Part shown: positions 26,804 to 57,725 of the stretch, piece by piece | How positions within the stretch are numbered: the first letter of the stretch is position 1 | How the letters are laid out: every line of letters starts with the position of its first letter | Virus record (IMG/VR): IMGVR_UViG_3300028883_000032 | Location: 124,001 to 188,000 of that record | Reading direction: 5' to 3' (one strand) | DNA length: 64,000 nt | Made by a program: the position numbers and the translations under genes | The notes under the pieces: model-generated | Database searches by the model: none | What the model saw: the letters and a program-made list of their open reading frames with translations, nothing else | Told to the model about the DNA's origin: nothing

Positions 26804-27166
26804 GGGCTCGACTGGAATCGACGGGTGGATATTGAGAATTGGTTGCGTTACTAGTCCTGTCAAGGACGATAATCCATGACAATCGATAACTGGCGAAACT
26901 CCAGTCCTTAAGGCTGCCTAATCCTTCGGGATTATGCACATAAAAGCCACGTTGACCGAATCCGATTCCCGTTAGGGTTCGAATCAACGTCGAAAATACG
27001 GGATGCTGTCTTACAGGCCTCGCTATAAGACATAAGATTTAGAGGATGGGTAGGGGTGATGAAAGTCTGGTGCCTGATCCCCGCCGAGATGAAATATCCA
27101 GACTAGGTAACGTAGACGCTAATTCTTGAGCCTCTCCGGACCCGGGTTCGAATCCCGGCGAGTCCA
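26804..27166 (+). ncRNA. ssrA: tmRNA, tag (A)GETPVLKAA*, CCA not encoded
   Basis: 5' GGGCTCGACTGGAATCGACGGG; 3' CCGGGTTCGAATCCCGG-CGAGTCC-A; G3.U pair; ATAACT-GGC resume context; tag ORF 26892-26921. Confidence 0.93.
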
Positions 27167-27168
27167 CT

Positions 27169-27196
27169 AAGCCACTATTATTAGTGGCTTTTTTTT
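27169..27196 (+). terminator. intrinsic terminator after tmRNA
   Basis: AAGCCACTA-TTAT-TAGTGGCTT plus T6. Confidence 0.85.
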
Positions 27197-29614: not shown

Positions 29615-29629
29615 CAGGTAGCTTTTTTT
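29604..29629. terminator. terminator at the convergence of the NYN gene and the RNAP gene
   Basis: AGCTACC-TTAACA-GGTAGCT plus T6. Confidence 0.7.
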
Positions 29630-32600
29630 ACCAGAATACTCCCTTTTCAGGATCAAACTGTGTAGCAAACTCGTTTGCATATAAGTATGCTGGCATGGGG
29701 TCATAGCCGTGTATATTTGTTTTGCTTGCTTTTGCTGCAGAGTCTTGAATAACCATTTTGATGTTATTACTAGTAACACGGCTTAACCAGTCGTCCCGTT
29801 CATGTGGTAAAACATTTATACTCTTGAAATAAGGTTTATATTCTATTTGTGGAAGCCCTTCTGCTTTTCTCTCTTTATTTTCCTTATCAACTACAGTTTT
29901 AAAAACTGTATCCCCCTTTATAAACCTTGAGTTATCTGGAGCATTTGTAATATAAGCGTTATCGCTTATACCCCTGATTATAGTTTCGAATGTACGCTTG
30001 TGGAATTTTCCGTCGTAAACGTTATCCATCCTATCCACAAGAGATTTTTGAGCAGTAATGAAGTCTGTTAATTCCGCTAATTCTTGCGGTTTTTTTGTAC
30101 CAGTACTTATAGGTTCTCCACGAGTAACTATATCGTCTATTTTAACCAGCAAGTCTCTTCCTGGTTTTACGTGGTGAAGTTTTGGACTATTACCATCTCC
30201 CATAATGGCAACTTCCCAACCTCCCGCCATTCCGGGTTTTATATTTATTACCCTACCTTCTATTTGTGCAAGTTCCGCTTTTCCTGGTAAAATTGCCGGG
30301 ACCTTTACAGTACGCTCTAATTCTGGGAATCCCGCTGTCACTCCTCCACCGGCTAGAGCGCTTCCCCCAGAGTGGAAAGTTTGCATGGTCAATTGTGTTG
30401 CTCTTTCAGATACAGCCTGTCCGTCTAAAACTCCAGCATTATAACCAATTTGTGGCAATTTTCCTTCAGGGGTTAGCCCATAACAAAAAGCACACATACC
30501 TCGTTCTGTTTCACAAGTTAGAGGGCTTCTAACCTTTATTAAACTGTTACCCAGTTTTTTAACCAAGTCAGGGTGGATTAAAGCCGTAATAGTATCCCCT
30601 ACTTCTACCACTCCCGGCACTCTTTGCTGGCTTATACGCCCTATAACGTTTTTGTCACTAGCAGATAACTCTATTCCATTTGTTGTACCACAATCTTGTT
30701 CGGTTATAAGCACGTCCTTCAGATTAGTTAAAAGCGCCTTATTTAAGGCACCAGTATCTTGTGTGTTTACGGCGCGATCAACGGTGCCTTTTCTTGCAGA
30801 ATACATGTGGTTCCAGAATGAAAAGTCGTCTACTCCCTCTGCCCAGGATTTTTCAACAGGAGTGGGGATTGGGCGCCCCTTAACATCCAAAAGAACCCCA
30901 GGCATGGTTAGTACTTGCCTAATACTGTCTGGTTTTCCCTGTGATCCAGAATCAAGCATGTGGAAAAACCTATTATCGCTTTTACGCGCATTTTCATATA
31001 ATTCTTTTTGAACTTTCTTGGAAGCTTCGTTATATATTTCAGCACGTTCCAGTGGAGTTTGGACACGGTTTGCTTTTTTGTGAGCAATTTCCATAATAGG
31101 ACCACGAGCACTACGGTCCATATCCAAGTCCGTTATACTCAAAGTTATAGGTTTACGATAAGAGTATTCTTTTCCAAGCTCTTTAAAGTGGTTCATCACC
31201 TCAGCAAACTTTTTAGGATGCCTATCGCTTATTTCCTTCATTATACGCTTAACCGTGTCAGCATCAAATACTAATGTTCTGTCTTTTAAGTCCTCCGGAA
31301 GCTTTTCTAAAACAAGCTCCTTACCGTAAGTTGTACGCCCTACTCCTGTTAATTCAACTTCCTCCGCTTCGTCAAGTTTGCCGTCTCTAACATCATCAGC
31401 CATTTTTTTGAATGTGCTATATTTTTTGCCATCATATTTTCTATCCACTTTTGTAAGATACCAAAGACCTTGTTGAAATATTTGACTAAATGAGCCAATG
31501 ATGGGCATAACAGGATCATCAAAATGGGGCCCATGTTGATAAATGTTTTTAGAAGGAATCATGCCAAACGCTTCACGAACGGCATCAGTGGATACAGGCA
31601 CATTAACTGACATGGCGTCACCGTCAAAGTCCGCATTAAAACCCTTAACAATAAGAGGATTTAATTTAATAGCTTGGCCATCAATGCGCTTTGGTATTGC
31701 AGCTTGTACACTATGTTTATGTAACGATGGAGCACGATTAAGTAGTACTGGTCTGTTCTCCATGGCCAAGTCTATTCCACGCAGGCCAAGTTCTGTTTCT
31801 TCTTGAATTTCCTTACGTGCAGTCAGGGGACTGTGACCACGTTTGGTCAGCTCCTGTACGGCAAATGGAAGATAAATTTCTTTTGCCATTCCTGTGGGAA
31901 TTCCTACCTCGTCTACTCCCAAGTTTGGATCAAGTGTAATGGTGCTGCGAGCAGAAAGATCCTGTCGTTTGCTCCAGACATTACTTTGTATAAAACCTTC
32001 TTTAGGTTCGGACCCAGATAGTGTGCGTAAGGCCCCCTCGTATTTTTCTTTCCCAAAGTGGGTTAGTTCTGTTAATCCCTGTAACTCCTTAAAATGATCG
32101 TAAAGCGACTTACGCACTTCATCAACTTTTATTTTCTCTGTGCCAATTTCCTTATCGCTAGCTAGGCCATCGTTAAGTTTCGATATGTCCCTATAATGAT
32201 AATTAATTGGACTTACCATTAAATCACCGGAAGGTAATGGGTAAACTGGCCTAAATACTGGAGGCATGACTGGAATTTTATTTGTGGTATAGGCTTCTTC
32301 CGCTGTCATTCCTAGTTTATCTAGAGCTTCTAAGTATCGTACGCGCTTATTAAGTTTATTTACGCGTGACTCCGGTGCGGTTTTTAATTCATTTTTTGAT
32401 TCCTGTAATTCTTTTTTTACATCTATAGCACGTAGGTCAGTAATTATTTTATCTATTCCACCCTCTTCCCCTTTAAGGCGCGCCTCATACTGAGGGCGGG
32501 TAATACCAAGCAATGATTGGATTGCTTTTTCATACATTGGAGAAGGCATGGTATCAGTTAATTCTATGTGGCTCCATTTTGTACCTCCATGTCCTCCGGT

Positions 32601-35600
32601 AATTTTTGAGTCAAACAACCCGCCTTTTAAAGTTGCTAAATTTTTACCCATTAGCATTTGTCCGGCATCGTCTAATTTACCGGCACTAATTTCAGATATT
32701 TTTTTATCCGTCAAAGGCATTAACTGAATTTCATTACCCTTTTTTTCACTATCAACCCCGGCGGCCTTCATGTAGGCTACCATTTTATCAAATACAAAAG
32801 ATTTTTGGGGAGTTGGTAGTGGCAAACCTAATTGTATTGCTCTCCACAGCTCATCATTCTTTTGTGATTTTATAGCAGTGAAATCTCTTAAATTGTGTTT
32901 TGCACCATGCGCTAGGAGAACATATGTTTGCATAGGATCGACGGATTGTCCCCCAGACTCTCCTCTACCGGGAGCCTCATTTACATTGTAGGAACCATAA
33001 CTACGGCTTTTTTCTTTATGTTCAACCACATGCATTAGTTTTAGTATGTACTGAGGACCAGTAAATACTTTCGATTTAAGAGGCTTACCGTCTTTGCCAT
33101 CTAATACCACCTCGTCAGGTTCAATTCCTTGTTTTTTAAGTTCGTTAAGGAGTATGTTTAATTTGTCCTTACCATCGAAATTACGAATGACGTAAGGTTT
33201 ACCTGTTTTTTCAGCAATTTTAGCCGCTGCTGTTTCTAACAATTGTGAGGGATTCATTCTAGAAGGTATTCCAAACGGAGACATTATCATGTCTACACGC
33301 TTACCACTAGCGGTATGTGGAGCCTCCTCGTCAGGTATGATCTTAACAACAATCCCTTTACCACCGTATCTGTTGGCTAGTTTGTCTCCCTCCACTAATG
33401 GGTGACTTACTTTCACACGAACTACAATTTTACGGCCCATTTTAGAAACATACATTACTTCCCCGGGCTCATCAAAATCATATACAACACTCCGGTCGTC
33501 ATATAATTTAGACACCTTACGGTTCATATTCTTTAGTATTCTCTGTTCGTCGGTCATTTCTCTTGGTTCAAGGTGTGCTATGAGTACATCACCCTTTTTA
33601 ACTCTTTCACCTTCTTTTATAATTCCTTCCGAATCAAGTTTATTATAACTTCCAGTATTTATAAAGGCACCTGGATATTCAGCGGCAAGCTTATCCTTAT
33701 TAAAAATACCATTAGTGGTTCTATGCGAAGTATAATTGTGCAGACTAGAATGTGTAAACTTTTTAGCAAACGAATCTGTTACCACCAACCCGTCTTCAAA
33801 TGAATAGCCCTTGTAAGGCATATAAGCTACTTGGACATTTGCGCCAAGACCTAATGTCTTTTTTCCACCAAAAGGTGGCTCAGCTTCAAAGTTATTTTTT
33901 GCTAATTCTTGTTTGGCCTTAACTACATCACCCGGTTTAACAGTAGGAGTACTGTGCAAGAACGACTCTTGGTTCATTGGAAAATAGTTATACAGCCCTA
34001 TTTTAAGGCTTTTTGACTCCCCTTCAGGTTTTATATGAATGTAGTCAGGTGTTACTTTAGTTACAACACCTGATTTAATGTCGTCGGGAACATATGGATT
34101 AAGATAGTCACCAATCGACTCATCAAAACTTTTATCGATTAATGGCCGACCAACTTGTACTAGAGGAGCTTCCCCATTATCAATGGTAAAAGCTTGTGAA
34201 GTGTTTTTAGCAGCCATTAGTGCCCTGTTTCCTTGGGTATGTTCTAAAAATGGCGTTAAGTTTGTTGGCCACCCAAACAGAGATTGAGGTTTAATGATGT
34301 AGCCATCAACATCTTTATGGGCAAAAACTTCTGCTTTTCCCTTATTATATCCCCGTATTACCCTTTTTGTAAAGTCCCCGTCATGTGGTATTGGTTTTCC
34401 ATTTTTTAAGACATACTGCTCACCAAAACCAACTCTCATGTTCCACAACTCATGCGGAGAGACGTACTTAATATCACCGTCTTTCATAATTACGGGAGTT
34501 GTCATCTGTCCTTTACTGTTTTTTTCAACAAACAGACTCAAAGGAAGAGAAATCCCCACTTTGGAACTATCCGGAGTTTGTACAGGATCAAGAAATCCAA
34601 TATGAGACGGATGGACGTTACGGGTTTCCATGGTTACCTCATGCATGGAAGGTATTCCTCCCGTACCTAATACTGAAGTTTTTCTCCATTCTGATAATAT
34701 TGAGACTGGGTTCGTTTGAGGAGGTGTCGCACTAAGGTCACTTGTAGTAAAGAAACTTTTTATGGGCTTACTATAAGTATCTGGACTTATAATATCCCTA
34801 ATCTGATCCTTTCTGTCCGTACGGAAACGTAAATTACCTGTAATTTGTTTGTCCTTTTTTTCAAGAAAGAACCCGAGTAGATCATCCACAGTCATGAGGG
34901 ACTTAAATACTAGCGAGTCACGCTCATCAGGATCTGCATCACCGCGTTGGACAGCCAGTAACTTTTTACTAACATCCATTAACGTATCTTTATTAACTTT
35001 TTTGTGTGATGCACCCAAAGTTATCAGTGTTGTATCTGGGTCGACTGCGGTTGTCTCAAAGTACTCATATAACATCTTTTTTGCTTCTTGTGGGGTTTTT
35101 GGTTTTTGATGTAAAACCTTTTCCACAAGGTTGACCCACATATCGGGCTCTTCTCCTTTATCGCTATTTTTGGCATAAAGGTCCTTGCCCCACAACTCAA
35201 GCATTTCTTGGTCTGTTACACCCAACGCCTTAAGAATGTTGTACAGTCTATAATTTTGATTCCCAGCACGCAATAGAAAAATTCCTTTTGTCGGGTCTAA
35301 AGTAAGTTTAAAATTAAAACCCTTTGCAAGATTAAATTGGGATTCAAAGTCACCATTATCTTTCATGCGTGTATATATACCAGACTTAAGGCGCAACTGA
35401 TTTGTTGTTTGGTATTCATTGCCGTCAATAATAGCACTAAATCTTTGTGTTTGTTTAGGTATATTGGCTATTTTTATTTTAGGTTTTTCATCAACAATGT
35501 CCCCTGTTTTTTTGTCGACAAGTCTTAAATGTCCGTAAACTGGAACAGACCAAGTACTACCACTAACTTTGGCTTTCTTTTGGGCTGGAAGATCGTTTGT

Positions 35601-35768
35601 GGGGGCGTCCTCGTCCCCTATGTCCAAACTAATCAATTCCAATTTTTTATTTTGTGCATCAATGGGGTATTGATTGGATATAAAATTACCAATTACATCA
35701 TAAATTTTAGAATTTTGAACATTAGGATTTAATGAGTCTTTTAATTCTCTGTCTGCATTCCTCATCAT
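29628..35768 (-). CDS. rpoBC: fused beta-beta' multisubunit DNA-directed RNA polymerase (2046 aa)
   Basis: beta motifs HPSHIGFLDPVQTPD, GDKLANRYGGKG, PFGIPSRMN, YILKLMH; beta' motifs HIEL, PVMPPVFRP, LLNRAPSLH, NADFDGD, ARKG, TQLTMQTFHSGG. Confidence 0.95.
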   Translation of the reverse strand: MMRNADRELKDSLNPNVQNSKIYDVIGNFISNQYPIDAQNKKLELISLDIGDEDAPTNDLPAQKKAKVSGSTWSVPVYGHLRLVDKKTGDIVDEKPKIKIANIPKQTQRFSAIIDGNEYQTTNQLRLKSGIYTRMKDNGDFESQFNLAKGFNFKLTLDPTKGIFLLRAGNQNYRLYNILKALGVTDQEMLELWGKDLYAKNSDKGEEPDMWVNLVEKVLHQKPKTPQEAKKMLYEYFETTAVDPDTTLITLGASHKKVNKDTLMDVSKKLLAVQRGDADPDERDSLVFKSLMTVDDLLGFFLEKKDKQITGNLRFRTDRKDQIRDIISPDTYSKPIKSFFTTSDLSATPPQTNPVSILSEWRKTSVLGTGGIPSMHEVTMETRNVHPSHIGFLDPVQTPDSSKVGISLPLSLFVEKNSKGQMTTPVIMKDGDIKYVSPHELWNMRVGFGEQYVLKNGKPIPHDGDFTKRVIRGYNKGKAEVFAHKDVDGYIIKPQSLFGWPTNLTPFLEHTQGNRALMAAKNTSQAFTIDNGEAPLVQVGRPLIDKSFDESIGDYLNPYVPDDIKSGVVTKVTPDYIHIKPEGESKSLKIGLYNYFPMNQESFLHSTPTVKPGDVVKAKQELAKNNFEAEPPFGGKKTLGLGANVQVAYMPYKGYSFEDGLVVTDSFAKKFTHSSLHNYTSHRTTNGIFNKDKLAAEYPGAFINTGSYNKLDSEGIIKEGERVKKGDVLIAHLEPREMTDEQRILKNMNRKVSKLYDDRSVVYDFDEPGEVMYVSKMGRKIVVRVKVSHPLVEGDKLANRYGGKGIVVKIIPDEEAPHTASGKRVDMIMSPFGIPSRMNPSQLLETAAAKIAEKTGKPYVIRNFDGKDKLNILLNELKKQGIEPDEVVLDGKDGKPLKSKVFTGPQYILKLMHVVEHKEKSRSYGSYNVNEAPGRGESGGQSVDPMQTYVLLAHGAKHNLRDFTAIKSQKNDELWRAIQLGLPLPTPQKSFVFDKMVAYMKAAGVDSEKKGNEIQLMPLTDKKISEISAGKLDDAGQMLMGKNLATLKGGLFDSKITGGHGGTKWSHIELTDTMPSPMYEKAIQSLLGITRPQYEARLKGEEGGIDKIITDLRAIDVKKELQESKNELKTAPESRVNKLNKRVRYLEALDKLGMTAEEAYTTNKIPVMPPVFRPVYPLPSGDLMVSPINYHYRDISKLNDGLASDKEIGTEKIKVDEVRKSLYDHFKELQGLTELTHFGKEKYEGALRTLSGSEPKEGFIQSNVWSKRQDLSARSTITLDPNLGVDEVGIPTGMAKEIYLPFAVQELTKRGHSPLTARKEIQEETELGLRGIDLAMENRPVLLNRAPSLHKHSVQAAIPKRIDGQAIKLNPLIVKGFNADFDGDAMSVNVPVSTDAVREAFGMIPSKNIYQHGPHFDDPVMPIIGSFSQIFQQGLWYLTKVDRKYDGKKYSTFKKMADDVRDGKLDEAEEVELTGVGRTTYGKELVLEKLPEDLKDRTLVFDADTVKRIMKEISDRHPKKFAEVMNHFKELGKEYSYRKPITLSITDLDMDRSARGPIMEIAHKKANRVQTPLERAEIYNEASKKVQKELYENARKSDNRFFHMLDSGSQGKPDSIRQVLTMPGVLLDVKGRPIPTPVEKSWAEGVDDFSFWNHMYSARKGTVDRAVNTQDTGALNKALLTNLKDVLITEQDCGTTNGIELSASDKNVIGRISQQRVPGVVEVGDTITALIHPDLVKKLGNSLIKVRSPLTCETERGMCAFCYGLTPEGKLPQIGYNAGVLDGQAVSERATQLTMQTFHSGGSALAGGGVTAGFPELERTVKVPAILPGKAELAQIEGRVINIKPGMAGGWEVAIMGDGNSPKLHHVKPGRDLLVKIDDIVTRGEPISTGTKKPQELAELTDFITAQKSLVDRMDNVYDGKFHKRTFETIIRGISDNAYITNAPDNSRFIKGDTVFKTVVDKENKERKAEGLPQIEYKPYFKSINVLPHERDDWLSRVTSNNIKMVIQDSAAKASKTNIHGYDPMPAYLYANEFATQFDPEKGVFW

Positions 35769-37376: not shown

Positions 37377-38306
37377 ATGACTAAACAATCTATAAGCATA
37401 TATAGTGTCCTTGATAAATCTCAAGAATATATAGAAGATATTATCTCTAACAAAGAAAAGCATTATATTACTTTTAGAATACCAAAACGTAATGGGCGTT
37501 TTCGTAAAATAGAGGCTCCTGACGACGCCTTAAAAGAGTTACAAACCACAATAAACGAAAAAGTATTTTCTATTTATAAACCCCATCGTATAGCGCACGG
37601 ATTTATTTCTAATAGATCGCCGAAAACAAATGCGGAAGCGCATGTGGGGGCAAAAATAATCGTGGAAGTGGATATAAAGGATTTTTTCCCATCCATTAAA
37701 AAAGACAGGGTTATTAAAGTACTTGAGTACTTATTTGTTCAAAAAGCTGGAATGTTTAAATCTTCCGCCCATAAGCAGGAAGCAATAAAAGTCATATCAG
37801 AATTAATTACTCACCATGATAGGCTACCCCAAGGAGCCCCAACTAGTCCACCGTTTAGTAATCTATCGGTGCTAGGAATGGATAAAGACTTATTAAAATT
37901 AGAAGAGCCTTATGGTGCAACCGTAACTAGATACGCAGATGATATCACAATGTCATCAGAATACAATGTACAATTGCCACAAGTTATCCCGGAATTACGT
38001 AAAATAGTGACCAAATATGGGTTTAAATTAAACAACGTTAAGACTCGAGTTATTCGACAAAATCGTAGGATGTTGGTAACTGGAGTAGTAGTTAACGAAA
38101 AACCGAACATTAGAAAGGATGTTCGACGTAGTTTAAGAGCTAAATTACATAATTACAATAGGGATCACACCCCTATCACCCAAGAAGAATACCAACGTAT
38201 TCAGGGGCAAATTGCTTGGATTAAGTATTTAAACCCTCTCCATGGAGATAGGCTCGGAGAACAATTGGACCGCGTTCAACGAGAAGAACCCACAGTAGTC
38301 TTATAG
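37377..38306 (+). CDS. retron-type reverse transcriptase (309 aa)
   Basis: IPKRNG..R.I.AP, AHGF, NAEAH (NAxxH), VDIKDFFPSI, LPQGAPTSP, TRYADDI, NNVKTR, VTGVVVN (VTG). Confidence 0.93.
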   Translation: MTKQSISIYSVLDKSQEYIEDIISNKEKHYITFRIPKRNGRFRKIEAPDDALKELQTTINEKVFSIYKPHRIAHGFISNRSPKTNAEAHVGAKIIVEVDIKDFFPSIKKDRVIKVLEYLFVQKAGMFKSSAHKQEAIKVISELITHHDRLPQGAPTSPPFSNLSVLGMDKDLLKLEEPYGATVTRYADDITMSSEYNVQLPQVIPELRKIVTKYGFKLNNVKTRVIRQNRRMLVTGVVVNEKPNIRKDVRRSLRAKLHNYNRDHTPITQEEYQRIQGQIAWIKYLNPLHGDRLGEQLDRVQREEPTVVL

Positions 38307-38653: not shown

Positions 38654-38777
38654 ATATGTGGCGAGGGCGGTGCCCACCAGAAACCTCGTGTTTCTGGCCC
38701 TAAAATATGTGGGACATAAAAAACATTTAGAAACTATTGAAGAAGTATTTAGTGCATTTAGAGAATATTAGATAAGT

Positions 38778-38850
38778 GTTACTGTAGCTCAATTAGTAGA
38801 GCGCCCCGCGATAAAACGGGGAGGTGTTGGAGCAAGGCCAACCAGTAATA
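38778..38850 (+). tRNA. tRNA-like element with a non-canonical T loop and an 8-nt anticodon loop (pseudo-tRNA)
   Basis: All four stems pair (GTTACTG/CAGTAAT, GCTC/GAGC, CCCCG/CGGGG, GTTGG/CCAAC); loops CGATAAAA and AGCAAGG. Confidence 0.65.
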
Positions 38851-38993
38851 GAGAGATTGTCCGCCGGGTCTAGCAAATAGATATTCGTAAAGGCAAGCTA
38901 GTACTTCCCCGCTGGGGTGGTCTCTCATTTTTTAGCCTATTGATTTTTACTACGGAAATGTGTATATTAATATACAACAACCAAGTATTATAT

Positions 38994-42409: not shown

Positions 42410-44293
42410 TTACGGATTACCTTTTTTAGGGGCCGTATGTTTTTCTTGTTTAGCTTTAGCCACTTGTGCGTTAGCTTTTTGTTGATCTATGTCTTGCTTA
42501 CGGGACTGCTGTTCAGCTTCTATCATTTCTGGCATTGCGGCCATCATTGCATTTTGTATCATTTGTGCACGCTTCATAACAGCAGATGCAAAGTAAGGAG
42601 CACTTTTCTGCATATTTACAACAACTTGCTGTTGTTGTTTTGGTGGCATCGCGATTAATTGCAAAGCATATTTATGTATAATTTCACTAGTATCCTCGCT
42701 TGTATTTCCGGTTTCAATTTTTGTCATTTCTTCTGCCAGCTCTTCATCTATCATCTTTTCGTCGATTCTTGCTTTCTCATCAAGATACGCCCACTCTGCT
42801 CCAGCTTGTGCCCTCCCTTGTTCAATGAAGCCAATTGAAGCTGCGGCAGCATCGCCCTCCGCCACTTTTGATTTTAGCTTATTTTCAAATTCAATGTCTT
42901 TTTCTTTTCTATCTCTATCTTTATCAGGATCAATACCAAATTCTTGTAGAAGAGCAGTATTGGATATTTTCCCGGCCTCGTTAAGTTCAAAATGAAGTCT
43001 CTTCGATTCAGAATCATCGTTCATTTTAAATTTTGTCATTCTTAAACTAATTTTATTGTAGCTGAGAATCGCAGCTAGTCTTGGAATGAGAAATTGATTT
43101 ATGAAATCATGTAAATCTTCACGGTAGGCAATAAAGTCGTTTTCAACAATACGCAAGGATATACTAGACCCTGTCCATGAAGCTCCCCCTTTAACAAATT
43201 CAATAGGAACACCAAAGGAGTTAATAACAGTTTCCTCCAAAAATTTCATTTCAGGGGTGGTCATTAAAGCTCTGGCATCTCCTCCAAGAGACTGATATCC
43301 AATTGGTATTGGGAAAATTCCTATATGGTTAGGGTCCCTTTTCCATTTCTTTATCTGCTCTTCAATTTGACTTCTCCACTCACCAAGGTTCATTCCTATA
43401 ATTGGGTTATCTGAACCATTGCTGGCTGGGAATAGAGCTCGTAAAGGAACAACGTGTTCCATAGCTATCGCTTCATTACCGCGACGCAAAGTTTGCATGT
43501 AGTAAATAAGTCCAAGAGCGGGGAGAATCATTGGTTTCCCCCACGCCTCGTCGTCTTCGCTTAGTGTTGGTTGCTTGAAATGGTAAATATTTTTTGGGTC
43601 TAGTTGTATTTTCTTATTAGCCTCTATTGCCTTGATGAATAACCAAGGGGTTTTATCTACTATTGGTATGGTTCCTTTTTTTACGTCTGCCTTTAATTCC
43701 GGTTTAACATTATAAAAATAGTCGGCTTCTCCTGTAAACTCATCATAATCAATTTCAATTCTTTCTGGCGCCAAAGCGACAACTTTTACAGAATCTGCTG
43801 TTTTTTGTGGAACATCATCCACACCAAACTCGTTAATCTGGGCTTTACATTTAGGGCAAGTCCCCGAATACTTAAATTGCCTAAATTTACGATCCTTTAT
43901 TGAATGGAGTTGGTGCTTTTCTCCGCACGATGAGCATGTTAACCATCGTTTAAATTTAAGGTTAAGGAGTACAATACAGTTTCCAAACACCATAAAATCC
44001 AATCCAATTTTTTTCAATAGGGATTTTAGTTTGATTTCAAATTTTAAAAGATTCTCCCAATTCTCTTTTTCTTCTTGATCTGCGTATTTTTCTATTATTG
44101 GTTGTGTAATTGGATAACTTACCATTTTTCCTATTACACTTCTTAAAAATTCATTCCTATAAAAGAAAATTCTACAATGTTTAAAGAGAGTTTTAATATT
44201 CTTTGGCATATATGTTCGAGACATATCAAAGAATGGGCTAGGATATTTGTTACTGCTGTTTGATGATTTATCTATAAAATAACTAGTTGACAT
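42410..44293 (-). CDS. portal protein with a zinc-ribbon insertion
   Basis: Portal-like pattern (LKKIGLD..VFGN, IYHFK, WGKP, IPIGYQSLGG, INSFGVP.EF); CSSC ... CPKC insert; position at the head end of the virion module. Confidence 0.75.
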   Translation of the reverse strand: MSTSYFIDKSSNSSNKYPSPFFDMSRTYMPKNIKTLFKHCRIFFYRNEFLRSVIGKMVSYPITQPIIEKYADQEEKENWENLLKFEIKLKSLLKKIGLDFMVFGNCIVLLNLKFKRWLTCSSCGEKHQLHSIKDRKFRQFKYSGTCPKCKAQINEFGVDDVPQKTADSVKVVALAPERIEIDYDEFTGEADYFYNVKPELKADVKKGTIPIVDKTPWLFIKAIEANKKIQLDPKNIYHFKQPTLSEDDEAWGKPMILPALGLIYYMQTLRRGNEAIAMEHVVPLRALFPASNGSDNPIIGMNLGEWRSQIEEQIKKWKRDPNHIGIFPIPIGYQSLGGDARALMTTPEMKFLEETVINSFGVPIEFVKGGASWTGSSISLRIVENDFIAYREDLHDFINQFLIPRLAAILSYNKISLRMTKFKMNDDSESKRLHFELNEAGKISNTALLQEFGIDPDKDRDRKEKDIEFENKLKSKVAEGDAAAASIGFIEQGRAQAGAEWAYLDEKARIDEKMIDEELAEEMTKIETGNTSEDTSEIIHKYALQLIAMPPKQQQQVVVNMQKSAPYFASAVMKRAQMIQNAMMAAMPEMIEAEQQSRKQDIDQQKANAQVAKAKQEKHTAPKKGNP

Positions 44294-44817
44294 TATTTAA
44301 GCTCCTCAAGCTGCATCATGCGGGTATATAGCAAAAGTTCCGCTAATCTTTGTGCTTGAGTCATGGTTGGAGTATCCGCGTCTACGGGTGTTTCTGGGTC
44401 CATTATAATTTTAGCTTTTTCGTAAATAGTTGAATCTGCATCAGGTAGCCTATCACAACCGTAGGGGTAAAAAGAATGTATCGCCCCAGAATTAAAAACA
44501 TGTTTAATATAAGATTGAACTTCCCACGAAAACTCAAAATTTGTTTTTAGTAATCTACGCGCAAAGTCTATTGCATACCATATATGTTTTGGAGAAACCT
44601 CTTGAATTTCTGTGAAATCAACGGAAAGCCTGTTTATAGCTCTCACAATATTTTCAAATTGGTACATGTCCTCAAAAAAATATTGGGATTGCATAAGGGC
44701 CCTAGCAGCCATTACCCAAGCAAAATCTAGTTCATCTATATCAGGTGGAAGATTTATACGAATAGTTTCGGGCTCAAGTTCCTCTGAAGTTTCAATAAGA
44801 TCTCGAATAGTCATCAT
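44293..44817 (-). CDS. hypothetical virion-module protein (174 aa)
   Basis: Coupled to the portal gene. Confidence 0.65.
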   Translation of the reverse strand: MMTIRDLIETSEELEPETIRINLPPDIDELDFAWVMAARALMQSQYFFEDMYQFENIVRAINRLSVDFTEIQEVSPKHIWYAIDFARRLLKTNFEFSWEVQSYIKHVFNSGAIHSFYPYGCDRLPDADSTIYEKAKIIMDPETPVDADTPTMTQAQRLAELLLYTRMMQLEELK

Positions 44818-44819
44818 TA

Positions 44820-45143
44820 TTATTGGTTTTTACGTTCTACTAGCTTGTTAGATAACAAATTAAATAGAGCAAATGACGCGGCAGTTGCCGGAACATTTTT
44901 AATTACTTTGGGTATAACACCTTGATACATAACTTTTGTTTTACCAAAAGCGCCGTTTGCTTTGCGAAGTTTCTTCTGAATAATATGCCAATTACCAGTT
45001 TGCTTCGCAGTAGCATAGGTATCTATTGGGTGAGATACAAGTGTGGCTCCAGCTCCAGCTAATCCACCAATTACAGCATTCTCGGTATCAGTTAGTTCCT
45101 TCTTTTTGGTACCAACCTTGTTAAAACCTAAATTCCTAAGCAT
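44820..45143 (-). CDS. single-repeat mitochondrial carrier (SLC25)-like protein
   Basis: AVIGGLAGAGATLVSHPIDT...Q and MYQGVIPKVIKNVPATAASFALF match both helices of one carrier repeat. Confidence 0.7.
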   Translation of the reverse strand: MLRNLGFNKVGTKKKELTDTENAVIGGLAGAGATLVSHPIDTYATAKQTGNWHIIQKKLRKANGAFGKTKVMYQGVIPKVIKNVPATAASFALFNLLSNKLVERKNQ

Positions 45144-46264
45144 TATAGCTCCGAAAGCAATCCACTGCGTGTCGGCAAAGGTAAGGATTTTAACACATCT
45201 AGTCCTTCCGGCCCTGACAAGTCCTCAGCTGTATCTTTATCTACATAAGCACTAATATCTTTTTCAGATAGCTTCTGTAAATCTGCGGAAGTTACTAATT
45301 GCCCGTCCACGATAGCCTCGGCAATTTTTTCTGTCTTGAGAGTAGCAATTAACGGATCTTCAATTCTGGTATTATAAAACTTTCTCCCGCCCCACTCTTC
45401 ATCAAGTCTTTCTAAAAGTGCTGCTATTTTTATAGGACCAAATTCAGCCTTTTTCTCAATTAGTTTGTCATAGAGCCCCTGCACTTCGTGTTCTACTGGT
45501 GCGTATGACTTCCTTATATTGATGTGTTTACCAAAATTTTCGTTAAACTCATCAGCTATAAGATCGGAGTATTTATTAAATAAGCCTGCAATTTTGACGC
45601 CGTCTTCTTTAACTTCCTGCGCATCGACAGCCTTTGCCAAATTCATTGCAAATTCTAGCCTGTCTCCCAATTCTAATTCTATATAGTTATTATCAAAATA
45701 AGAATTGGCTGTTTTTACATATTCCGGGGAATCGAGTCTCCATCTTTTTTCTTTCGGTAATGCAAAGTCACTGCTGGCCTCCAAACCCGCATTTTTTTGC
45801 ATTAGCGAATTATTACGACGCTTCTTAGCCCAAGCAACTTTGTCTATTTCATCAGTATTTACAATGTTGCCATTATTGGGAATCTCCCCGACATACTGTT
45901 CAAGATCTTCAGGGAAGTCGAATCCCCAGCGTTTCGATGCCTTCTTTAAATAATAAGAAGCTGTTTTACATATCTCGTCTGGAAGACTATCGGCTTTTGC
46001 AGCTAAAAGTTTAGCATTTAATTCAGATAAATCTTTAGAAATATGTGCGAATTTATTAAAACTCCCAACCCCCGGAATTCGTAGGACAAGAGCCACGTCA
46101 TGTTTACCTAGCTCTTGTTGTTCTTCATCTGTAGGAACGTGTGCTTCTTTAATGGAATCATCCATGGAGTCCATTACTCCGATAATAAGAGTGGTGTCCC
46201 CACTAGACAGTTCATCCACTACATCGTACCTAAGCGTTGCCAGTTTGTTCATTTGATTCTCCAA
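45143..46264 (-). CDS. putative head-associated protein rich in K-x-A motifs (373 aa)
   Basis: 12 KxA tripeptides counted by hand; next to the portal. Confidence 0.6.
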   Translation of the reverse strand: MENQMNKLATLRYDVVDELSSGDTTLIIGVMDSMDDSIKEAHVPTDEEQQELGKHDVALVLRIPGVGSFNKFAHISKDLSELNAKLLAAKADSLPDEICKTASYYLKKASKRWGFDFPEDLEQYVGEIPNNGNIVNTDEIDKVAWAKKRRNNSLMQKNAGLEASSDFALPKEKRWRLDSPEYVKTANSYFDNNYIELELGDRLEFAMNLAKAVDAQEVKEDGVKIAGLFNKYSDLIADEFNENFGKHINIRKSYAPVEHEVQGLYDKLIEKKAEFGPIKIAALLERLDEEWGGRKFYNTRIEDPLIATLKTEKIAEAIVDGQLVTSADLQKLSEKDISAYVDKDTAEDLSGPEGLDVLKSLPLPTRSGLLSEL

Positions 46265-46929
46265 CTGATAAGTTCATTCATAATTATGTTTCCGGGACAA
46301 TCTGGTTTCTGGTCTTGTGCTTCACAATGCCCCTTCACATTAAGTTTACTAATAGAATATCGATTTGTCAATAGGTCCAATAGGCGTTTTAGACTTCTTA
46401 ATTGGGGAGGAGTAGGAACTTCTTTTCCTTTATAGCTAGGACCAGCAAAATCTCCTAACACTAGAACGCCTATCGCCGTGGAATTTTTACCTTTAGTGTG
46501 CCATACCAAGTCACTAACTTTGTTAGCTTGGTACAGCCTACCACTTTTACCAATAACAAAATGGTAGCAAATATGTGGACAACCATCCGGACTTATATGG
46601 TTTCTCTCCCAAGCAGCTATTGTACCATCATGGTCTCTATCGTGTGTTGGAGTAATGTGGTACTTATTAATAGCTTCTATTGTCCCTGTGGAGGCTGCTT
46701 GATGAACAATAATTGAATCTATGTTTGATACAGTCCTCTTACTCCACTTTCTTCCTTCTGGGTATTTTTCATTCCCGGAATGCCACGGCAATACATTTAT
46801 AACATTATAAATGGTTGGTTCTAGATCCCTCTTTACTTTTGGTAAAGATGGTAGTTCTTGCATGGTCTGTTCATCTTCTTTCTTATTAAATAAAACTGAC
46901 CACGGTCCTAACAAATTTCGTAAACTCAT
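46249..46929 (-). CDS. endolysin, N-acetylmuramoyl-L-alanine amidase (Amidase_2)
   Basis: IIVHQAA, ICYHFVIGKSG, WHTKGKN..AIGV..GDF, VKGHCE. Confidence 0.9.
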   Translation of the reverse strand: MSLRNLLGPWSVLFNKKEDEQTMQELPSLPKVKRDLEPTIYNVINVLPWHSGNEKYPEGRKWSKRTVSNIDSIIVHQAASTGTIEAINKYHITPTHDRDHDGTIAAWERNHISPDGCPHICYHFVIGKSGRLYQANKVSDLVWHTKGKNSTAIGVLVLGDFAGPSYKGKEVPTPPQLRSLKRLLDLLTNRYSISKLNVKGHCEAQDQKPDCPGNIIMNELISWRIK

Positions 46930-46941
46930 AACTCCCTTTGG

Positions 46942-47193
46942 TTAGTCGATAATGGTGTTTTGTTCAAAAACATCCATCTTGCGGTTGGCTAGTTTGGCAG
47001 TATCGTTTCTAGATTTATCAAGGAAAGAGTAACCTAAAAGGCTTGAAAAAATAAATACTAACGAGGTGTCTATAGCAATAGCTGGTAGAAAGGCTATGAT
47101 TATCGATGAGATAAATACAGCCCACAGCATTACTCTAGCCAAACTCCATTTTTCTCCGTCTAATGTTAATAAATCTTTTATTAGTTTCTTCAC
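46942..47193 (-). CDS. putative holin
   Basis: 83 aa, two TM segments, charged C-terminus, next to the endolysin. Confidence 0.65.
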   Translation of the reverse strand: MKKLIKDLLTLDGEKWSLARVMLWAVFISSIIIAFLPAIAIDTSLVFIFSSLLGYSFLDKSRNDTAKLANRKMDVFEQNTIID

Positions 47194-47205: not shown

Positions 47206-47979
47206 TTATCTAAATATTGGATATGTATACTCTAGTTCAACTAAAGCCTGCTTATTAGTATTTAGTTCTAACATTAATTTGGCCCTCTGAAATTCGATAC
47301 CACCTAGAGCACCGGCACCCCATATTTTGCCTTTATCCATCACCCACCCAAAATTTCCGCGGGCCCCAACAAAAAACCCCAATTGTTCCCGCCAAGACGG
47401 TTTATATGGGTTAACGGATATGTTTGTTTGTTCGAAACTTACTCCCGGTAAGTTACTTTCTATATAACCTGTCCAAGTTTTATTCCTATTTTCACTCAAG
47501 GTGAAGGAGATAGGAATACGAGCGGAAATATCCTTCAAATATACTCCATATGGGTCTTCTATTTGAAAGGCCCCTCTTATACGATACACATTTTCGTGAG
47601 CAATGTCAAATGCCCTTATCGGAATAGTATCTGATAAAGTTTCGTATGTGGTGTCGGAGGAATCGATTGGTTGGGACGAAAACCAAGAATTTATGGTTTG
47701 CTTCATCTCTGCCATTGTTTGGGCTTGAGCTCTTATAGTTCCACCATTTTTAGCAATATCATCCTTTGCTTCCTTTGTAAGAGCCTCGATATTACCAGCT
47801 TGAATTGCTAGTTTACTAATAACACCATCAGCGAGTTCTTGCTGTTCTTTTATTTGAGCAAGTTGGTTATATAACCCAATACGTTCACTATCTGCTTTTT
47901 TATTTTGGTAATACCCAATACCACCTTGAACTAATACTAGGCCTACCAATACAAGCATTATTATATATTGTAATTTCAT
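47206..47979 (-). CDS. spanin-like membrane-anchored coiled-coil protein
   Basis: N-terminal TM segment plus coiled coil; lysis cassette context. Confidence 0.45.
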   Translation of the reverse strand: MKLQYIIMLVLVGLVLVQGGIGYYQNKKADSERIGLYNQLAQIKEQQELADGVISKLAIQAGNIEALTKEAKDDIAKNGGTIRAQAQTMAEMKQTINSWFSSQPIDSSDTTYETLSDTIPIRAFDIAHENVYRIRGAFQIEDPYGVYLKDISARIPISFTLSENRNKTWTGYIESNLPGVSFEQTNISVNPYKPSWREQLGFFVGARGNFGWVMDKGKIWGAGALGGIEFQRAKLMLELNTNKQALVELEYTYPIFR

Positions 47980-47982
47980 ATT

Positions 47983-48486
47983 TTATGGATGGTTTACATA
48001 CAACGTATCGTTATCATCTATGTAGAAAAACGCATTTTTATTTGAGTCATAATGATAGCTTTTGCTATTATGCATCTCTTCTTTTAAGCCGTGCTTGCTT
48101 ATTTTATAGTCTATAAGATTAAAGAGGTTTAACCCCAATGAAACAAGTAATACGATTAATACTGACCAAAATTGACTATTAGCGCGTTTTTGGGCTTCTA
48201 TTAATTGCGTACTTTCTGTTTTCCACAATGTATTATCTTTCCCAATCCCATCAAGTTTTACCTCAAGCGGAGAGTTAGCAACACTTAAATCGATTCCGGC
48301 ATTTTTTAATGCTTCAGTTTGTGCTATCACAATAGCTTCTAACTTTGGCAAAACCGTTATCGCATTTTTAAGTTCATGCTGATTTTCAGTAATTTGTGCA
48401 ATTAATCGAGCAACTCGATTACTAACTTCTATTGATTGCACAAGGTTTTGAGGATCTATTAATATGTGATTACTAGCATCCGCCAT
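47983..48486 (-). CDS. coiled-coil protein with C-terminal TM segment
   Basis: FWSVLIVLLVSLGLNLF; lysis cassette context. Confidence 0.6.
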   Translation of the reverse strand: MADASNHILIDPQNLVQSIEVSNRVARLIAQITENQHELKNAITVLPKLEAIVIAQTEALKNAGIDLSVANSPLEVKLDGIGKDNTLWKTESTQLIEAQKRANSQFWSVLIVLLVSLGLNLFNLIDYKISKHGLKEEMHNSKSYHYDSNKNAFFYIDDNDTLYVNHP

Positions 48487-49294
48487 ATTTTAAAGATCCC
48501 TGTATTTGGTTATCCATATAAGCAATTAGCGACGACATCTCTTGAGATAATTTTGTTGGCGTATTATAAATACGTCTTCCAGAGATAGCTACGCCCCCGT
48601 TGTATTTATAGATCAGAAAATTGTAGTATCTCATTTTTTCTCCTTCTGCCGATTCCTTTAAACTTATAGGGAAGTTTGTTAACTCCCTTGATTTCCCCGT
48701 TAATAAAACTTGGGGTAAAAATTCAAGTAGGTTTTCTATTAAACTGTGCGTACATAGCGAATTTACTACATTCCATTCTCTGTTTTTAACGGAAACACGT
48801 GGCTTATCATCTACAAACTCTATAACCCCAAAAAGGTCTTCCATGTTTTCTACTATGCTGTGTAATTTTTTGTTAGCATTTATTAATTCTTGTTCAGTTA
48901 ATTTCTGTTCTGTTATGTCTTTAGAAATTACTACAAATAGACGCTCACCTCTTAAAACAGTAGGATACGCCGACATATTAAATACCTTATCACCATTTTT
49001 ACTATGATACTTATACTCTAAATTTTTAATTGGTTGACCTGTCTTTGACAGATTTTTTAAAGCTTGTTTTACTTTTGGGACGTCTTCCTCAAATACATGA
49101 TCAAACGGGTTGATGTCATCGGAGTACCCTAGAATATTATGCAACGCTGGGTTACCCCATATGGTTTCCCCATTATTGTTACAAAAACTAACCAAGTCCG
49201 TAGAGTGTTCAAACAATATTTTAAAGTTATTGTTTATCTCTTCTGCAACATCTTCAAATTTTCTTACTTGTTGGGTTTCAAGCTCTTCTGCCAT
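48473..49294 (-). CDS. PAS/PAC sensory-domain protein
   Basis: DLVSFCNNNG.TIWGNPALHNILGYS, DHVFEED, KNGD, VISKDITEQK.TEQEL; likely start MAEEL 49294 (ORF track 49351). Confidence 0.85.
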   Translation of the reverse strand: MAEELETQQVRKFEDVAEEINNNFKILFEHSTDLVSFCNNNGETIWGNPALHNILGYSDDINPFDHVFEEDVPKVKQALKNLSKTGQPIKNLEYKYHSKNGDKVFNMSAYPTVLRGERLFVVISKDITEQKLTEQELINANKKLHSIVENMEDLFGVIEFVDDKPRVSVKNREWNVVNSLCTHSLIENLLEFLPQVLLTGKSRELTNFPISLKESAEGEKMRYYNFLIYKYNGGVAISGRRIYNTPTKLSQEMSSLIAYMDNQIQGSLKYGGC

Positions 49295-49354
49295 CTTAAA
49301 ATTCTCGCACTGTTTATAATATATAATACACAATTTTAGTGTAAAAATCAAATA

Positions 49355-56468: not shown

Positions 56469-57725
56469 TTAAGTTACAGTAGAATTTACTGGTGGCAGAC
56501 CAGCTATTTGGGTAACCATACTCATAATTTGATTAGCGTCTCCTAAAGTAATTATGATTGGCTCGTCCGCTTTAATTATAGCTCCTGTGGAACTTCGCAC
56601 CTGCCTACCTAGGCGAACTTCTCCGTCCAATACCTCAATTTCATTTGGGTGCTTTAGTTCACCGGAATCGGTGTTACTATCACTGTAGCTCCAAATGACA
56701 CTGGTAGATGCTCCTGCAAAACTTTCATTTAACAAGTGCTCGATTCCGACTGTTTGGTAATAGGCATCATTGTTTTTCCAAACGGATCTATACCACGCAT
56801 CACTCCATTCAATACTCCAGCTTGAAGGATCAGGTAAATCCGTAGCGACTAAACCGCTTCCAGTTGGAACTAAAATACTCAATAAACTCCAATAGCCTAT
56901 GCTTCTATTTGCTGGCGGATCTATATACCCAGAAACAGCACCAAAAAAATCAGAAGTAGAAAAAGTTGTTGGTAGCATGTTTAGATTTTCAGAACTACCC
57001 GATACAGTATATGCAACATCTCTTGTCATTTCTTCATCTCCGACCCCCTTCACCACAACATCAGTTAGGGTTGGAAAATTTCGCATTAAAGATGCACGTA
57101 TACCATCTGATGAGGAGATGCTCTCGTTTATACCTGTTGTTAAAATTTTAGATTTAAGCTGGGTATTTGTATCTCTTGTGGTCCCTCCGGTTATACTAAC
57201 TGGATTATCAACCAGAATATAACCAGTTTTTAACCCCTTTACAATTTTTATTGTGCCCGGGTTAGTTTCTCCCGAAGAACCATAAGATTCAGCTGTAATT
57301 GGAATAGATCCAGTAGAATATAAAGGATATCTTTCAATATTCTGACGCATCTGTTCTTCAGTTATACTGAAGGTTCTAGTGGGATGATACTTCTTACCAT
57401 CTTCAGTTTCAAATGTTATATCTGTAGTGAATATTTCGGTTCGCGGAGATTGGTAGTATACATACACGTTACCGGTGGCCTTGCTCCCAACCGTACGATC
57501 AACGTAAAAGTTAGCGGAAAATTTATCCATGGCAGATTCAGATATCGCATTTTCATCTTCCATGGTCATCTCACGCATTTTTTGCTCGTGATCTTCTTCA
57601 TATGGTGCCAGTATTGTGCTTAATGGACTGACTTGAAGATCTATCAGAGGGGATGACTCGGTAACACTTATAGTGCTATCGTGTTCTTTTAGCTTCTTTT
57701 TTACATACTGTACTATATTGTTCAT
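56469..57725 (-). CDS. baseplate gpJ-like protein, N-terminal part
   Basis: FYVDR..GSKATG.V, I.AESYGSSG, VDNP..ITGG..RDTN.QL. Confidence 0.7.
   Translation of the reverse strand: MNNIVQYVKKKLKEHDSTISVTESSPLIDLQVSPLSTILAPYEEDHEQKMREMTMEDENAISESAMDKFSANFYVDRTVGSKATGNVYVYYQSPRTEIFTTDITFETEDGKKYHPTRTFSITEEQMRQNIERYPLYSTGSIPITAESYGSSGETNPGTIKIVKGLKTGYILVDNPVSITGGTTRDTNTQLKSKILTTGINESISSSDGIRASLMRNFPTLTDVVVKGVGDEEMTRDVAYTVSGSSENLNMLPTTFSTSDFFGAVSGYIDPPANRSIGYWSLLSILVPTGSGLVATDLPDPSSWSIEWSDAWYRSVWKNNDAYYQTVGIEHLLNESFAGASTSVIWSYSDSNTDSGELKHPNEIEVLDGEVRLGRQVRSSTGAIIKADEPIIITLGDANQIMSMVTQIAGLPPVNSTVT

Follow-up and report, generated by a model that had tools for sequence, protein, structure and literature searches.

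Can a bacteriophage encode a single, stand-alone repeat of the mitochondrial carrier (SLC25) fold, and what would such a protein do there? We address this question for a 64,000-nucleotide stretch of viral DNA, called the window below (positions 124,001 to 188,000 of IMG/VR record IMGVR_UViG_3300028883_000032), in which a first-pass annotation had read a 107-amino-acid open reading frame (ORF) as one such repeat. SLC25 carriers are overwhelmingly eukaryotic proteins with three repeats per polypeptide, whereas the protein studied here has one repeat and is encoded by a bacteriophage. The three-fold pseudo-symmetry of carriers has long been taken as a remnant of an ancestor with two helices that was triplicated. 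To our knowledge no carrier with a single repeat has been reported from nature, and full-text searches of the literature found no description of phage-encoded or single-repeat carriers.

A single carrier repeat in a tailed-phage genome

The window belongs to a 206,856-bp IMG/VR viral genome with a CheckV completeness estimate of 100%. Its portal, baseplate, sheath, endolysin and spanin genes identify it as the genome of a large contractile-tailed phage. The gene in question is:

44820..45143, minus strand: gene for a 107-aa stand-alone SLC25 (Mito_carr) repeat protein, from the ORF and its match to PF00153; founding member of a phage family of 16 clusters

The reading frame runs from an ATG at 45143 to a TAA stop codon. 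The first-pass annotation had named no strand, and both peptides that it quoted are present in the translation. The Pfam carrier profile PF00153 matches the protein with an E-value of 4.7e-9 (36.3 bits, against a curated gathering cutoff of 22.3 bits), and residues 20-103 align to positions 6-94 of the 96 in the profile, so the relationship proposed at first sight extends over nearly the full profile. In a six-frame search of the 206,856-bp genome there is exactly one match to PF00153, and exactly one to a profile of the phage family. The ORFs that flank the gene have no similarity to carriers in Pfam. The tripartite architecture of SLC25 proteins is absent, both from this 107-aa protein with its single repeat and from its phage relatives, all of which are 99-122 aa long, and in place of the eukaryotic mitochondrial inner membrane the setting is a tailed-phage genome.

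The reverse comparison also speaks for homology. A profile built from the 16 phage proteins alone matches every solved carrier, with E-values from 1e-11 to 4e-17; these include UCP2 (3.8e-17) and AAC1 (3.6e-15), as well as UCP1, AAC2/3 and the GTP/GDP carrier, and in the UCP2 and AAC1 alignments it matches each of the three repeats. Because the phage-only profile matches all solved carriers, homology to the SLC25 repeat is secure. Judged from these sequence comparisons, the ORF is almost certainly a genuine stand-alone single SLC25 repeat of a tailed phage.

A family of single-repeat proteins in aquatic phages

An exhaustive phmmer search of 1.84 billion representative proteins returned 404 matches at E <= 1e-3, nearly all of them carriers. 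Most are three-repeat carriers of 250-400 aa with about 30% identity to the window protein, and the highest listed identity to any three-repeat protein is 39%. A separate set of matches consists of proteins of 99-122 aa that align with the window protein from end to end, the closest being P0003 (46% identity, E = 4.9e-21). After an added profile search, the family comprises at least 16 protein clusters, whose members have 28-46% identity to the window protein. All of them come from uncultured aquatic phage contigs, in Tara Oceans surface samples and other aquatic metagenomes, and the sources annotate them as "hypothetical protein" with no other name.

Several other searches found no relatives. 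A word-indexed protein search with the single window sequence returned only the window protein itself. Neither the window protein nor P0009 gave a match when IMG/VR was scanned for peptide patterns, an approach for which the family varies too much in its alignment. There was also no match by tblastn of the carrier-repeat protein against 50,697 GenBank phage records, or by megablast of the region against GenBank phages. The PHROG families had no match at E <= 0.01 to the carrier-repeat protein or to three of its neighbors (the 174-aa, 373-aa and portal proteins described below), so no known head, packaging or ejection family is available for the carrier-repeat protein at that threshold.

Short PF00153 matches in metagenomes are usually fragments, several of which we saw in the family profile search, and carriers are overwhelmingly eukaryotic. 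It is on these grounds that the gene might be taken for an artefact or a relic. It could be a match by chance, DNA from a contaminating eukaryote, a piece of a three-repeat gene that has broken up, or a captured fragment in decay that no longer has a function. The E-values lie far beyond chance, however, and the flanking ORFs are not carrier-like. The 16 clusters share the same length and the same start and keep invariant motifs at 28-46% identity, which implies purifying selection. One intact copy of the gene is present in each of the two complete jumbo genomes of about 210 kb that were searched. Finally, the phage gene order is conserved on independent contigs from different samples, which excludes the contamination or mis-assembly that the first-pass annotation had wished to guard against. 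We therefore give an artefact or relic a negligible probability, and as far as sequence analysis reaches it is already refuted.

Homologs of SLC25 outside eukaryotic nuclei are known from Legionella (LncP and Lpg1137) and from giant viruses (mimivirus and Yasminevirus) (PMC3252375, PMC5621508). Those proteins are full three-repeat carriers that act in the mitochondria of eukaryotic hosts, whereas the phage proteins are single repeats in phages of bacteria, which have no mitochondria. An effector aimed at eukaryotic mitochondria in the style of LncP was considered and set aside, given the single repeat, the location in a tailed-phage structural operon and the lack of any secretion context.

Packing motifs are kept and both gates have lost a partner

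In SLC25 proteins the matrix gate and its glutamine brace form the motif Px[DE]xx[KR]xxxQ, the cytoplasmic gate has the motif [YF][DE]xx[KR], and the piGpixpiG and pixxxpi motifs serve the packing of helices between neighboring domains; across SLC25 proteins the matrix network is a highly conserved feature (PMC7611774). We compared the 16 phage proteins to a reference set of 244-252 repeats (true repeats), each excised from one of 84 three-repeat carriers that the same search had returned. Positions are counted either along the window protein or from its kink proline, P39. The parts of the window protein are as follows:

45099..45143, minus strand: residues 1-15, basic N-terminal leader ML..LGF.K.g.KKK, family-specific and absent from true carriers in the alignments
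44997..45089, minus strand: residues 19-49, odd-numbered-type helix with piGpixpiG (G26, G30), P39-x-D41, A44, K47 and Q48, from the AlphaFold2 (AF2) model and motif statistics
44928..44990, minus strand: residues 52-72, lysine-rich matrix helix and loop in which the canonical E-G is replaced by K, from AF2 helices 52-61 and 64-72 and column statistics
44826..44918, minus strand: residues 76-106, even-numbered-type helix following Y73-x-G75, with K79, K82, P85 and F94-N95, from the AF2 model and column statistics

Residues G26, G30, P39, D41, G75 and K82 are invariant across the 16 phage clusters, and K14 and K79 are nearly so. The two glycines of piGpixpiG, at P-13 and P-9, are present in all 16 phage proteins, compared to 91% and 82% of true repeats, and the small residues that flank them occur in 81-100% of the phage family. 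The kink proline is found in 100% of the family, the acid at P+2 in 16 of 16 proteins (always as Asp), and the glutamine brace, Q48 at P+9 in the window protein, in 14 of 16 (88%, versus 75% of true repeats). The window protein also keeps L72-Y73-x-G75, and in the second helix P85 is present in 13 of 16 proteins and an aromatic residue at position 94 in 15 of 16. Position 79, which is family-specific, is K in 15 proteins and R in one. K82 is present in all 16, at what we take to be the contact-point position of R79 in AAC1, by our own register count and not from an alignment.

The gates are different. At P+5, the matrix-gate position, none of the 16 phage proteins has K or R, as against 95% of 244 true repeats, and K or R is instead found at P+8 in 75% of them (versus 5% of true repeats). 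The first-pass annotation was right that alanine replaces the gate residue (A44), but it placed the next lysine two residues further on, and K47 is in fact three residues after A44. At the cytoplasmic gate, the acid at position 95 is present in about 1 of 16 phage proteins compared to 176 of 252 true repeats (70%), and the K/R is kept in 9 of 16; the window protein reads F94-N95-L-L-S98. The E-G of the canonical matrix-helix signature, [DE]G....[YWF][KR]G, is also replaced, with K at position 68 in 12 of 16 proteins. The family keeps the motifs that build the fold and pack the helices, and lacks one partner of each gate salt bridge. Set beside SLC25 proteins such as the ADP/ATP carrier and UCP1/2, the phage repeats share the helix layout, the proline kink with its Asp and Gln brace, piGpixpiG, Y-x-G and K/R..P; they differ in the shift of K/R from P+5 to P+8, the missing cytoplasmic-gate acid, the change of E-G to K, the extra basic N-terminal leader, and a net charge about twice as high. 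What is new here is the single-repeat architecture, the bacteriophage setting and the distinctive gate-less motif pattern.

Loss of the gates has a parallel in MTCH1 and MTCH2, SLC25-derived proteins in which the scaffold and helix prolines are kept, the gate salt bridges are lost and a hydrophilic groove opens to the bilayer, the groove of MTCH2 acting like YidC-type insertases (PMC13274618). The phage family resembles them in having an SLC25 scaffold that lacks gate residues. The MTCH proteins, however, have about five helices in one chain and reside in the holozoan mitochondrial outer membrane, whereas each phage protein is one repeat, and among the phmmer matches there was no specific sequence affinity between the phage family and MTCH proteins.

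Since neither gate network can form, the phage proteins would not be canonical carriers and would not work by alternating access. This bears on the possibility that the protein is a true homotrimeric solute transporter, encoded as an auxiliary metabolic gene, that moves a phosphate-like symmetric anion or nucleotides across the inner membrane. In a trimer, the cavity would be lined by a ring of three copies of the invariant K82, with K79 at a distance of one turn, and phosphate acquisition genes are common in marine phages. The ancestor of carriers, too, is thought to have been fully symmetric (PMC12410006). Both gate networks are nevertheless missing in all 16 members, and the gene is located inside a structural, late operon and not among early or metabolic genes. 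We regard a transporter as quite improbable.

The basic leader has a distribution of its own. In part of the family it takes the form ..EK.A.KKKK. The LGF.K leader follows the repeat in P0045 (at the C-terminus) and P0049 (residues ~150-160), and in another relative LGF.K recurs within the ORF that follows the carrier gene (L010:10530-10560, 159 aa before the stop of that ORF), so that it behaves like a movable short module. We considered LGF.K as a shared targeting signal and rejected it, because in the window genome only the carrier-repeat protein has it.

Predicted structure and charge

An AF2 model was made from an alignment of 56 sequences (the 16 phage proteins and 40 carrier repeats). 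It has a predicted local distance difference test score (pLDDT) of 84.4 and helices at residues 19-49, 52-61, 64-72 and 76-106, that is, a kinked odd-numbered helix, a short matrix helix and an even-numbered helix, as in a carrier repeat. Single-sequence AF2 gave a pLDDT of 58.8 and was unusable. Among AlphaFold Database (AFDB) Swiss-Prot entries, about two dozen of the top 30 matches to the model are SLC25 proteins with one repeat aligned (query TM-score, TMq, 0.5-0.68; E = 0.07-1), and in the Atlas structure search the matches are eukaryotic Mito_carr clusters (TMq 0.62-0.68, root-mean-square deviation 2.7-3.8 Å). Foldseek found nothing significant in the PDB, BFVD gave only a non-significant match to a Yasminevirus carrier, and a wide search with VIA-align gave generic helical hairpins that were not significant, with UCP2 at rank 17 (Z = 5.5). 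The expectation that a predicted monomer would resemble a carrier repeat is borne out: the helices are the expected ones and the nearest shapes are SLC25 repeats. Two reservations apply, in that three of the searches were not significant and the input alignment itself contained carrier repeats. The model is consistent with an SLC25 repeat, and corroborates the sequence comparisons without being independent of them.

Mean Kyte-Doolittle hydropathy is almost the same in the phage proteins and the true repeats, at 1.06 versus 1.02 for the odd-numbered helix and 0.60 versus 0.67 for the even-numbered helix. The helices of the window protein are weakly hydrophobic (maximum KD19 of 1.17), and it is as a match to true carrier helices that their hydrophobicity counts in favor of membrane competence. 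Charge sets the family apart. Isoelectric points are 9.8-11.2 and the net charge of the whole protein is +9 to +23; the core has a net charge of +9.7, compared to +4.2 in true repeats, and the matrix-side loop +8.3 compared to +4.2, the excess being mostly lysine. Going by the sequence, the charge of the loop is what the positive-inside rule of bacteria would lead one to expect of a cytoplasmic loop, and this would be the same orientation as in mitochondria.

The gene lies between a scaffold-like gene and the portal gene in a late operon

The carrier-repeat gene is near the end of a long operon on the minus strand. In order of transcription, the operon consists of baseplate- and fiber-sized ORFs, a PAS-domain gene, a gene for a 167-aa protein, a lysis cassette (Rz-like spanin, 83-aa holin-like protein, Amidase_2 endolysin), the gene for a 373-aa DUF6582-type protein, the carrier-repeat gene, the gene for a 174-aa protein and the portal gene. 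The members closest to the carrier-repeat gene, and the major head gene, are located as follows:

47983-48486, minus strand: 167-aa protein with a C-terminal hydrophobic segment, no family match
47206-47979, minus strand: Rz-like spanin, from PHROG
46942-47193, minus strand: 83-aa holin-like protein with two transmembrane segments, from its two hydrophobic segments, no family match
46249-46929, minus strand: Amidase_2 endolysin (Pfam 2.8e-17; PHROG amidase/endolysin)
45143..46264, minus strand: upstream gene, DUF6582-type acidic 373-aa scaffold-like protein (weak in Pfam, above cutoff in the L006 homolog)
44293..44817, minus strand: downstream gene, acidic 174-aa partner that starts 2 nt past the carrier stop, no family or fold match
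42410..44293, minus strand: portal protein, 627 aa, last large gene of the operon, from Atlas structure and tblastn
Genome 88.4-89.3 kb: major head protein, about 80 kb from the carrier-repeat gene

We identify the 627-aa protein as the portal from its structural similarity to Portal_Mu and Phage_portal clusters in the Atlas (TM-score 0.57-0.72) and from tblastn, in which it matches Vibrio phages (1e-70), the protein annotated as the portal in Salmonella phage Arash (5e-64) and the portal of Bacillus phage G. The Atlas neighbors of the 373-aa protein, which has a net charge of -21, are viral DUF6582/DUF2213 clusters; an Atlas search with the 174-aa partner gave no lead. The first-pass annotation had assigned the carrier repeat to a head module. 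The portal one gene downstream and the adjacent scaffold-like DUF6582 protein agree with that assignment, but the lysis cassette is immediately upstream and the major head gene is far away.

The TAA of the 373-aa gene overlaps the ATG of the carrier-repeat gene (TAATG), with a GGAG 7 nt upstream. Together with the 2-nt gap to the downstream gene, this overlap indicates translational coupling. Promoter-like and terminator-like sites show no enrichment. In every main-lineage locus the products of both flanking genes are acidic, with net charges of -11 to -27 upstream and -14 to -16 for the downstream proteins of 160-174 aa, and the sequences suggest that these charge-complementary neighbors may form a complex with the basic carrier-repeat protein.

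The gene order in relatives, read towards the portal, is as follows:

L002/L003 (P0003): Amidase_2, 367 aa, carrier, 173 aa
L006-L009 (P0009, contigs of up to 94 kb): Amidase_2, 357-aa DUF6582, 134 aa, 342-aa actin-fold protein, carrier, 160 aa, 629 aa
L012/L013 (P0155, Tara, 106 kb): 356 aa, 125 aa, actin, carrier, 162 aa, 634 aa
L014 (P0030): actin, carrier, 172 aa
JGI contig (P0034): 322 aa, carrier, 162 aa, 628 aa
L018 (P0011): DUF6582 protein, carrier, HNH endonuclease insertion

The 629-aa protein of L006 has 42% identity to the window portal (E = 7e-167), and the downstream proteins of 160-174 aa form one family with 28-48% identity (at the same position in L003, L006, L012 and L014). 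In about half of the lineages, a protein of 340-342 aa with an actin fold is encoded just upstream of the carrier:

L006:6980-8008, L012:5949-6977 and L014:187-1209: actin-fold protein, whose gene overlaps or abuts the carrier start (8-nt overlap in L006 and L012)
L018:1531-2523: HNH homing endonuclease (phrog_559, 7e-59), directly downstream of the carrier in the usual place of the 160-aa partner

The L006 actin-fold protein matches Volactin in Pfam (1.2e-70), with weaker matches to MreB and FtsA. We rejected the actin-fold protein as an obligatory companion of the carrier repeat, because the window genome has no Volactin homolog. A phage actin homolog inside a portal-proximal late operon is unusual in itself. 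Portal linkage was likewise rejected as a property of the whole family: it applies to the main lineage, and the divergent P0146 lineage (L010), on a 215,016-bp IMG/VR genome, is an exception.

Proximity to the lysis cassette raises the possibility of a lysis-timing or depolarizing protein (a holin, antiholin or pinholin-like protein), in which an oligomer of gate-less two-helix hairpins would leak ions late in infection. The protein is small, with two helices and charged termini; in the window, L002 and L006 a single gene separates its gene from that of the Amidase_2 endolysin; its gene would be co-transcribed late; and loss of both gates would favor a leak. The operon, however, contains a better holin candidate beside the endolysin, the 83-aa protein with its two strongly hydrophobic segments, and a spanin as well; the 83-aa and 167-aa membrane proteins on either side of the spanin are likely to be the holin and a holin-associated component. 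A conserved gene for a protein of about 360 aa (373 aa in the window) is always found between the carrier gene and the endolysin, L012-L014 have no adjacent endolysin and still show the portal linkage, and no PHROG lysis family matches. A role in lysis is, on this evidence, quite unlikely.

The position of the gene also suggests a packaged prohead-core or ejection protein, in line with the ejected virion protein proposed in the first-pass annotation, one that is loaded with the scaffold and portal, ejected at infection, and forms an oligomeric pore or anchor in the inner membrane. The gene is located between those for a scaffold-like protein and the portal, much as T4 genes 67 and 68 lie between the portal and scaffold genes. 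The net charge of +9 to +23, with a core more than twice as basic as that of true repeats, would suit packaging with DNA or with acidic core proteins. The genome also encodes a giant RNA polymerase (RNAP)-like protein, of a kind that some phages package and eject. Against this, no PHROG head or ejection family matches the protein, and its more positive loop fits insertion from the cytoplasmic side. A six-helix barrel would be too narrow for double-stranded DNA, and phages with contractile tails generally need no separate channel-forming ejection proteins. We consider a packaged protein of this kind unlikely.

A possible membrane platform for portal assembly

The reading that we tentatively favor, without yet calling it probable, is a homo-oligomeric membrane protein, carrier-like but without gates, with a role in the assembly of the portal or prohead. 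It would sit in the inner membrane of the host and point its lysine-rich loop to the cytoplasm, as in mitochondria. It would self-associate through piGpixpiG and the small-residue interfaces, forming a symmetric, carrier-like barrel of six helices that in the simplest case is a homotrimer. We infer a homo-oligomer because the packing motifs are under the strongest constraint and each complete genome searched has one copy of the gene. The homotrimer proposed in the first-pass annotation is plausible and the simplest case, because three subunits would restore the six-helix fold. Without gates there would be no alternating-access exchange, and the barrel would instead form a lysine-lined hydrophilic cavity or groove in the membrane, holding rings of K79, K82 and D41. 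The role that we favor is that of a platform or chaperone, bound to the membrane, that helps to initiate the portal, by analogy to gp40 and YidC in T4. We rate the two parts of this reading separately: the case for a homo-oligomeric membrane barrel is evenly balanced, and a function as a portal platform, which we argue by analogy, is possible but rather doubtful.

SemiSWEET offers a conceptual parallel for the first part. It is a single-unit bacterial transporter that oligomerizes to rebuild the fold formed by internal repeats in eukaryotic SWEET proteins, as has been shown experimentally. The fold is unrelated to SLC25, and in the phage proteins both an oligomer and any transport would be inferred. 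For the second part the parallel is T4, whose proheads start on a membrane-bound initiator made of the gp20 portal protein, which needs the phage chaperone gp40 and contacts YidC, and in which gp67 and gp68 are small prohead-core proteins (PMC9958956). Like gp40, gp67 and gp68, the carrier repeat would be a small late protein tied to the portal or prohead, and the analogy is one of position and logic only. The coupling of an MreB/FtsA-like actin gene to the carrier in about half of the lineages fits a membrane-organized assembly step.

A number of observations count against the favored reading as a whole. The structural matches are weak by E-value, and the presence of carrier repeats in the AF2 alignment makes that comparison partly circular. 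Both termini are basic as well as the loop, which blurs the topology. A packaged core or ejection protein would suit the position of the gene just as well. In the P0146 lineage the neighbors of the carrier gene have no detectable similarity to window genes and no functional annotation. The cultured phages Arash and Vibrio D181 have a related portal and, by tblastn, no relative of the carrier repeat, and in both of them the genes upstream of the portal are on the opposite strand. Because these phages do without it, the carrier-repeat protein is not generally needed by this type of portal. Finally, no RNA run is listed for the window sequence, which occurs in only one sequencing run, of marine-sediment DNA.

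The setting places the SLC25 fold in bacteriophages of aquatic bacteria, linked to the portal and often to a phage actin homolog, and it points to an undescribed membrane-associated step of assembly or infection in large uncultured marine phages.

Evolutionary origin of the phage repeat

We built a tree over 98 alignment columns that contains the 16 phage repeats together with 135 taken from 45 carriers. The phage family forms one clade (support 90/83), present in 91% of bootstrap trees. Its weak sister group (89/81) consists of repeat 1 of two short, long-branched carriers, one of which, the three-repeat protein P0028, is on a contig with giant-virus hallmarks. Approximately unbiased (AU) tests rejected none of the three groupings of the phage clade with one carrier repeat (p = 0.16 for repeat 1, 0.50 for repeat 2 and 0.64 for repeat 3). 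Neither the tree nor the AU tests gave a supported nesting of the kind expected from recent capture of a specific eukaryotic or giant-virus carrier repeat. Nothing in the sequences indicates that the phage family is a recent capture, and nothing indicates that it is ancient.

The first-pass annotation had suggested that the gene bears on the origin of the triplicated fold. Its relevance is real, but the tree and AU tests assign the phage clade to no repeat and to no carrier subfamily. The ancestor of carriers has been described as "likely to be fully symmetric" (PMC12410006). Because the family is monophyletic, looks old by its divergence (28-46% identity of its members to the window protein, and at most 39% listed for a three-repeat protein), is not nested in a carrier subfamily and receives no repeat assignment from the AU tests, the data allow a reading in which the phage proteins are functional, fully symmetric homotrimers in bacterial membranes, of a lineage that predates the eukaryotic triplication or is independent of it. 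We regard this as a long shot. If it were true, the family would be a living model of the ancestor with one repeat that has long been postulated for SLC25. It would also hint that the prokaryotic virosphere had the fold before its recruitment by mitochondria. Whatever its age, a conserved stand-alone repeat with intact packing motifs makes the hypothesis of a triplicated ancestor directly testable: one can ask whether a single repeat trimerizes, what its symmetric cavity binds, and what the fold does without gates.

Other features of the genome

The remaining features that we identified in the window and the genome are:

Genome 74.8-76.4 kb: tail sheath
60106-60879, minus strand: sigma-70-like factor with regions 3 and 4, within the late structural operon
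56469-57725: baseplate wedge
48473-49351, minus strand: PAS-domain protein, within the late structural operon
38777-38851, plus strand: tRNA-like gene with a four-base anticodon (ataa), from ARAGORN, not at the Rfam gathering threshold
37377-38306, plus strand: reverse-transcriptase-like polymerase (phrog_2825, 6.5e-66)
29628-35768, minus strand: 2046-aa ORF with matches to several PHROG families for the RNA polymerase beta subunit, distributed over its length
26804-27169, plus strand: transfer-messenger RNA (tmRNA), ARAGORN tag GETPVLKAA, Rfam RF00023 (111.8 bits, E = 7e-43, full-length model)

The PAS and sigma-like genes sit among tail-fiber-sized and baseplate genes of the late operon. The genome also encodes three tRNAs, and the ataa tRNA-like gene may be a tRNA of the frameshift-suppressor type or a degenerate one. 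The 2046-aa ORF suggests a fused giant RNAP-like protein; in Salmonella phage Arash, a distant relative in culture, an RNAP beta gene is located two genes downstream of the portal.

Around the portal gene, a reverse-transcriptase-like gene (RVT_1 in the relatives) and a glycosyltransferase gene are kept within a few kb in the window, L006, L012 and the JGI contig with P0034, and Hc1 histone-like and GP88 genes are also found near the portal in relatives. The window portal itself has a CxxC...CxxC zinc-ribbon-like insertion at residues 119-152 (~43840-43940), with a weak match to DUF4379 (E = 0.006), whereas the L006 portal lacks these cysteines.

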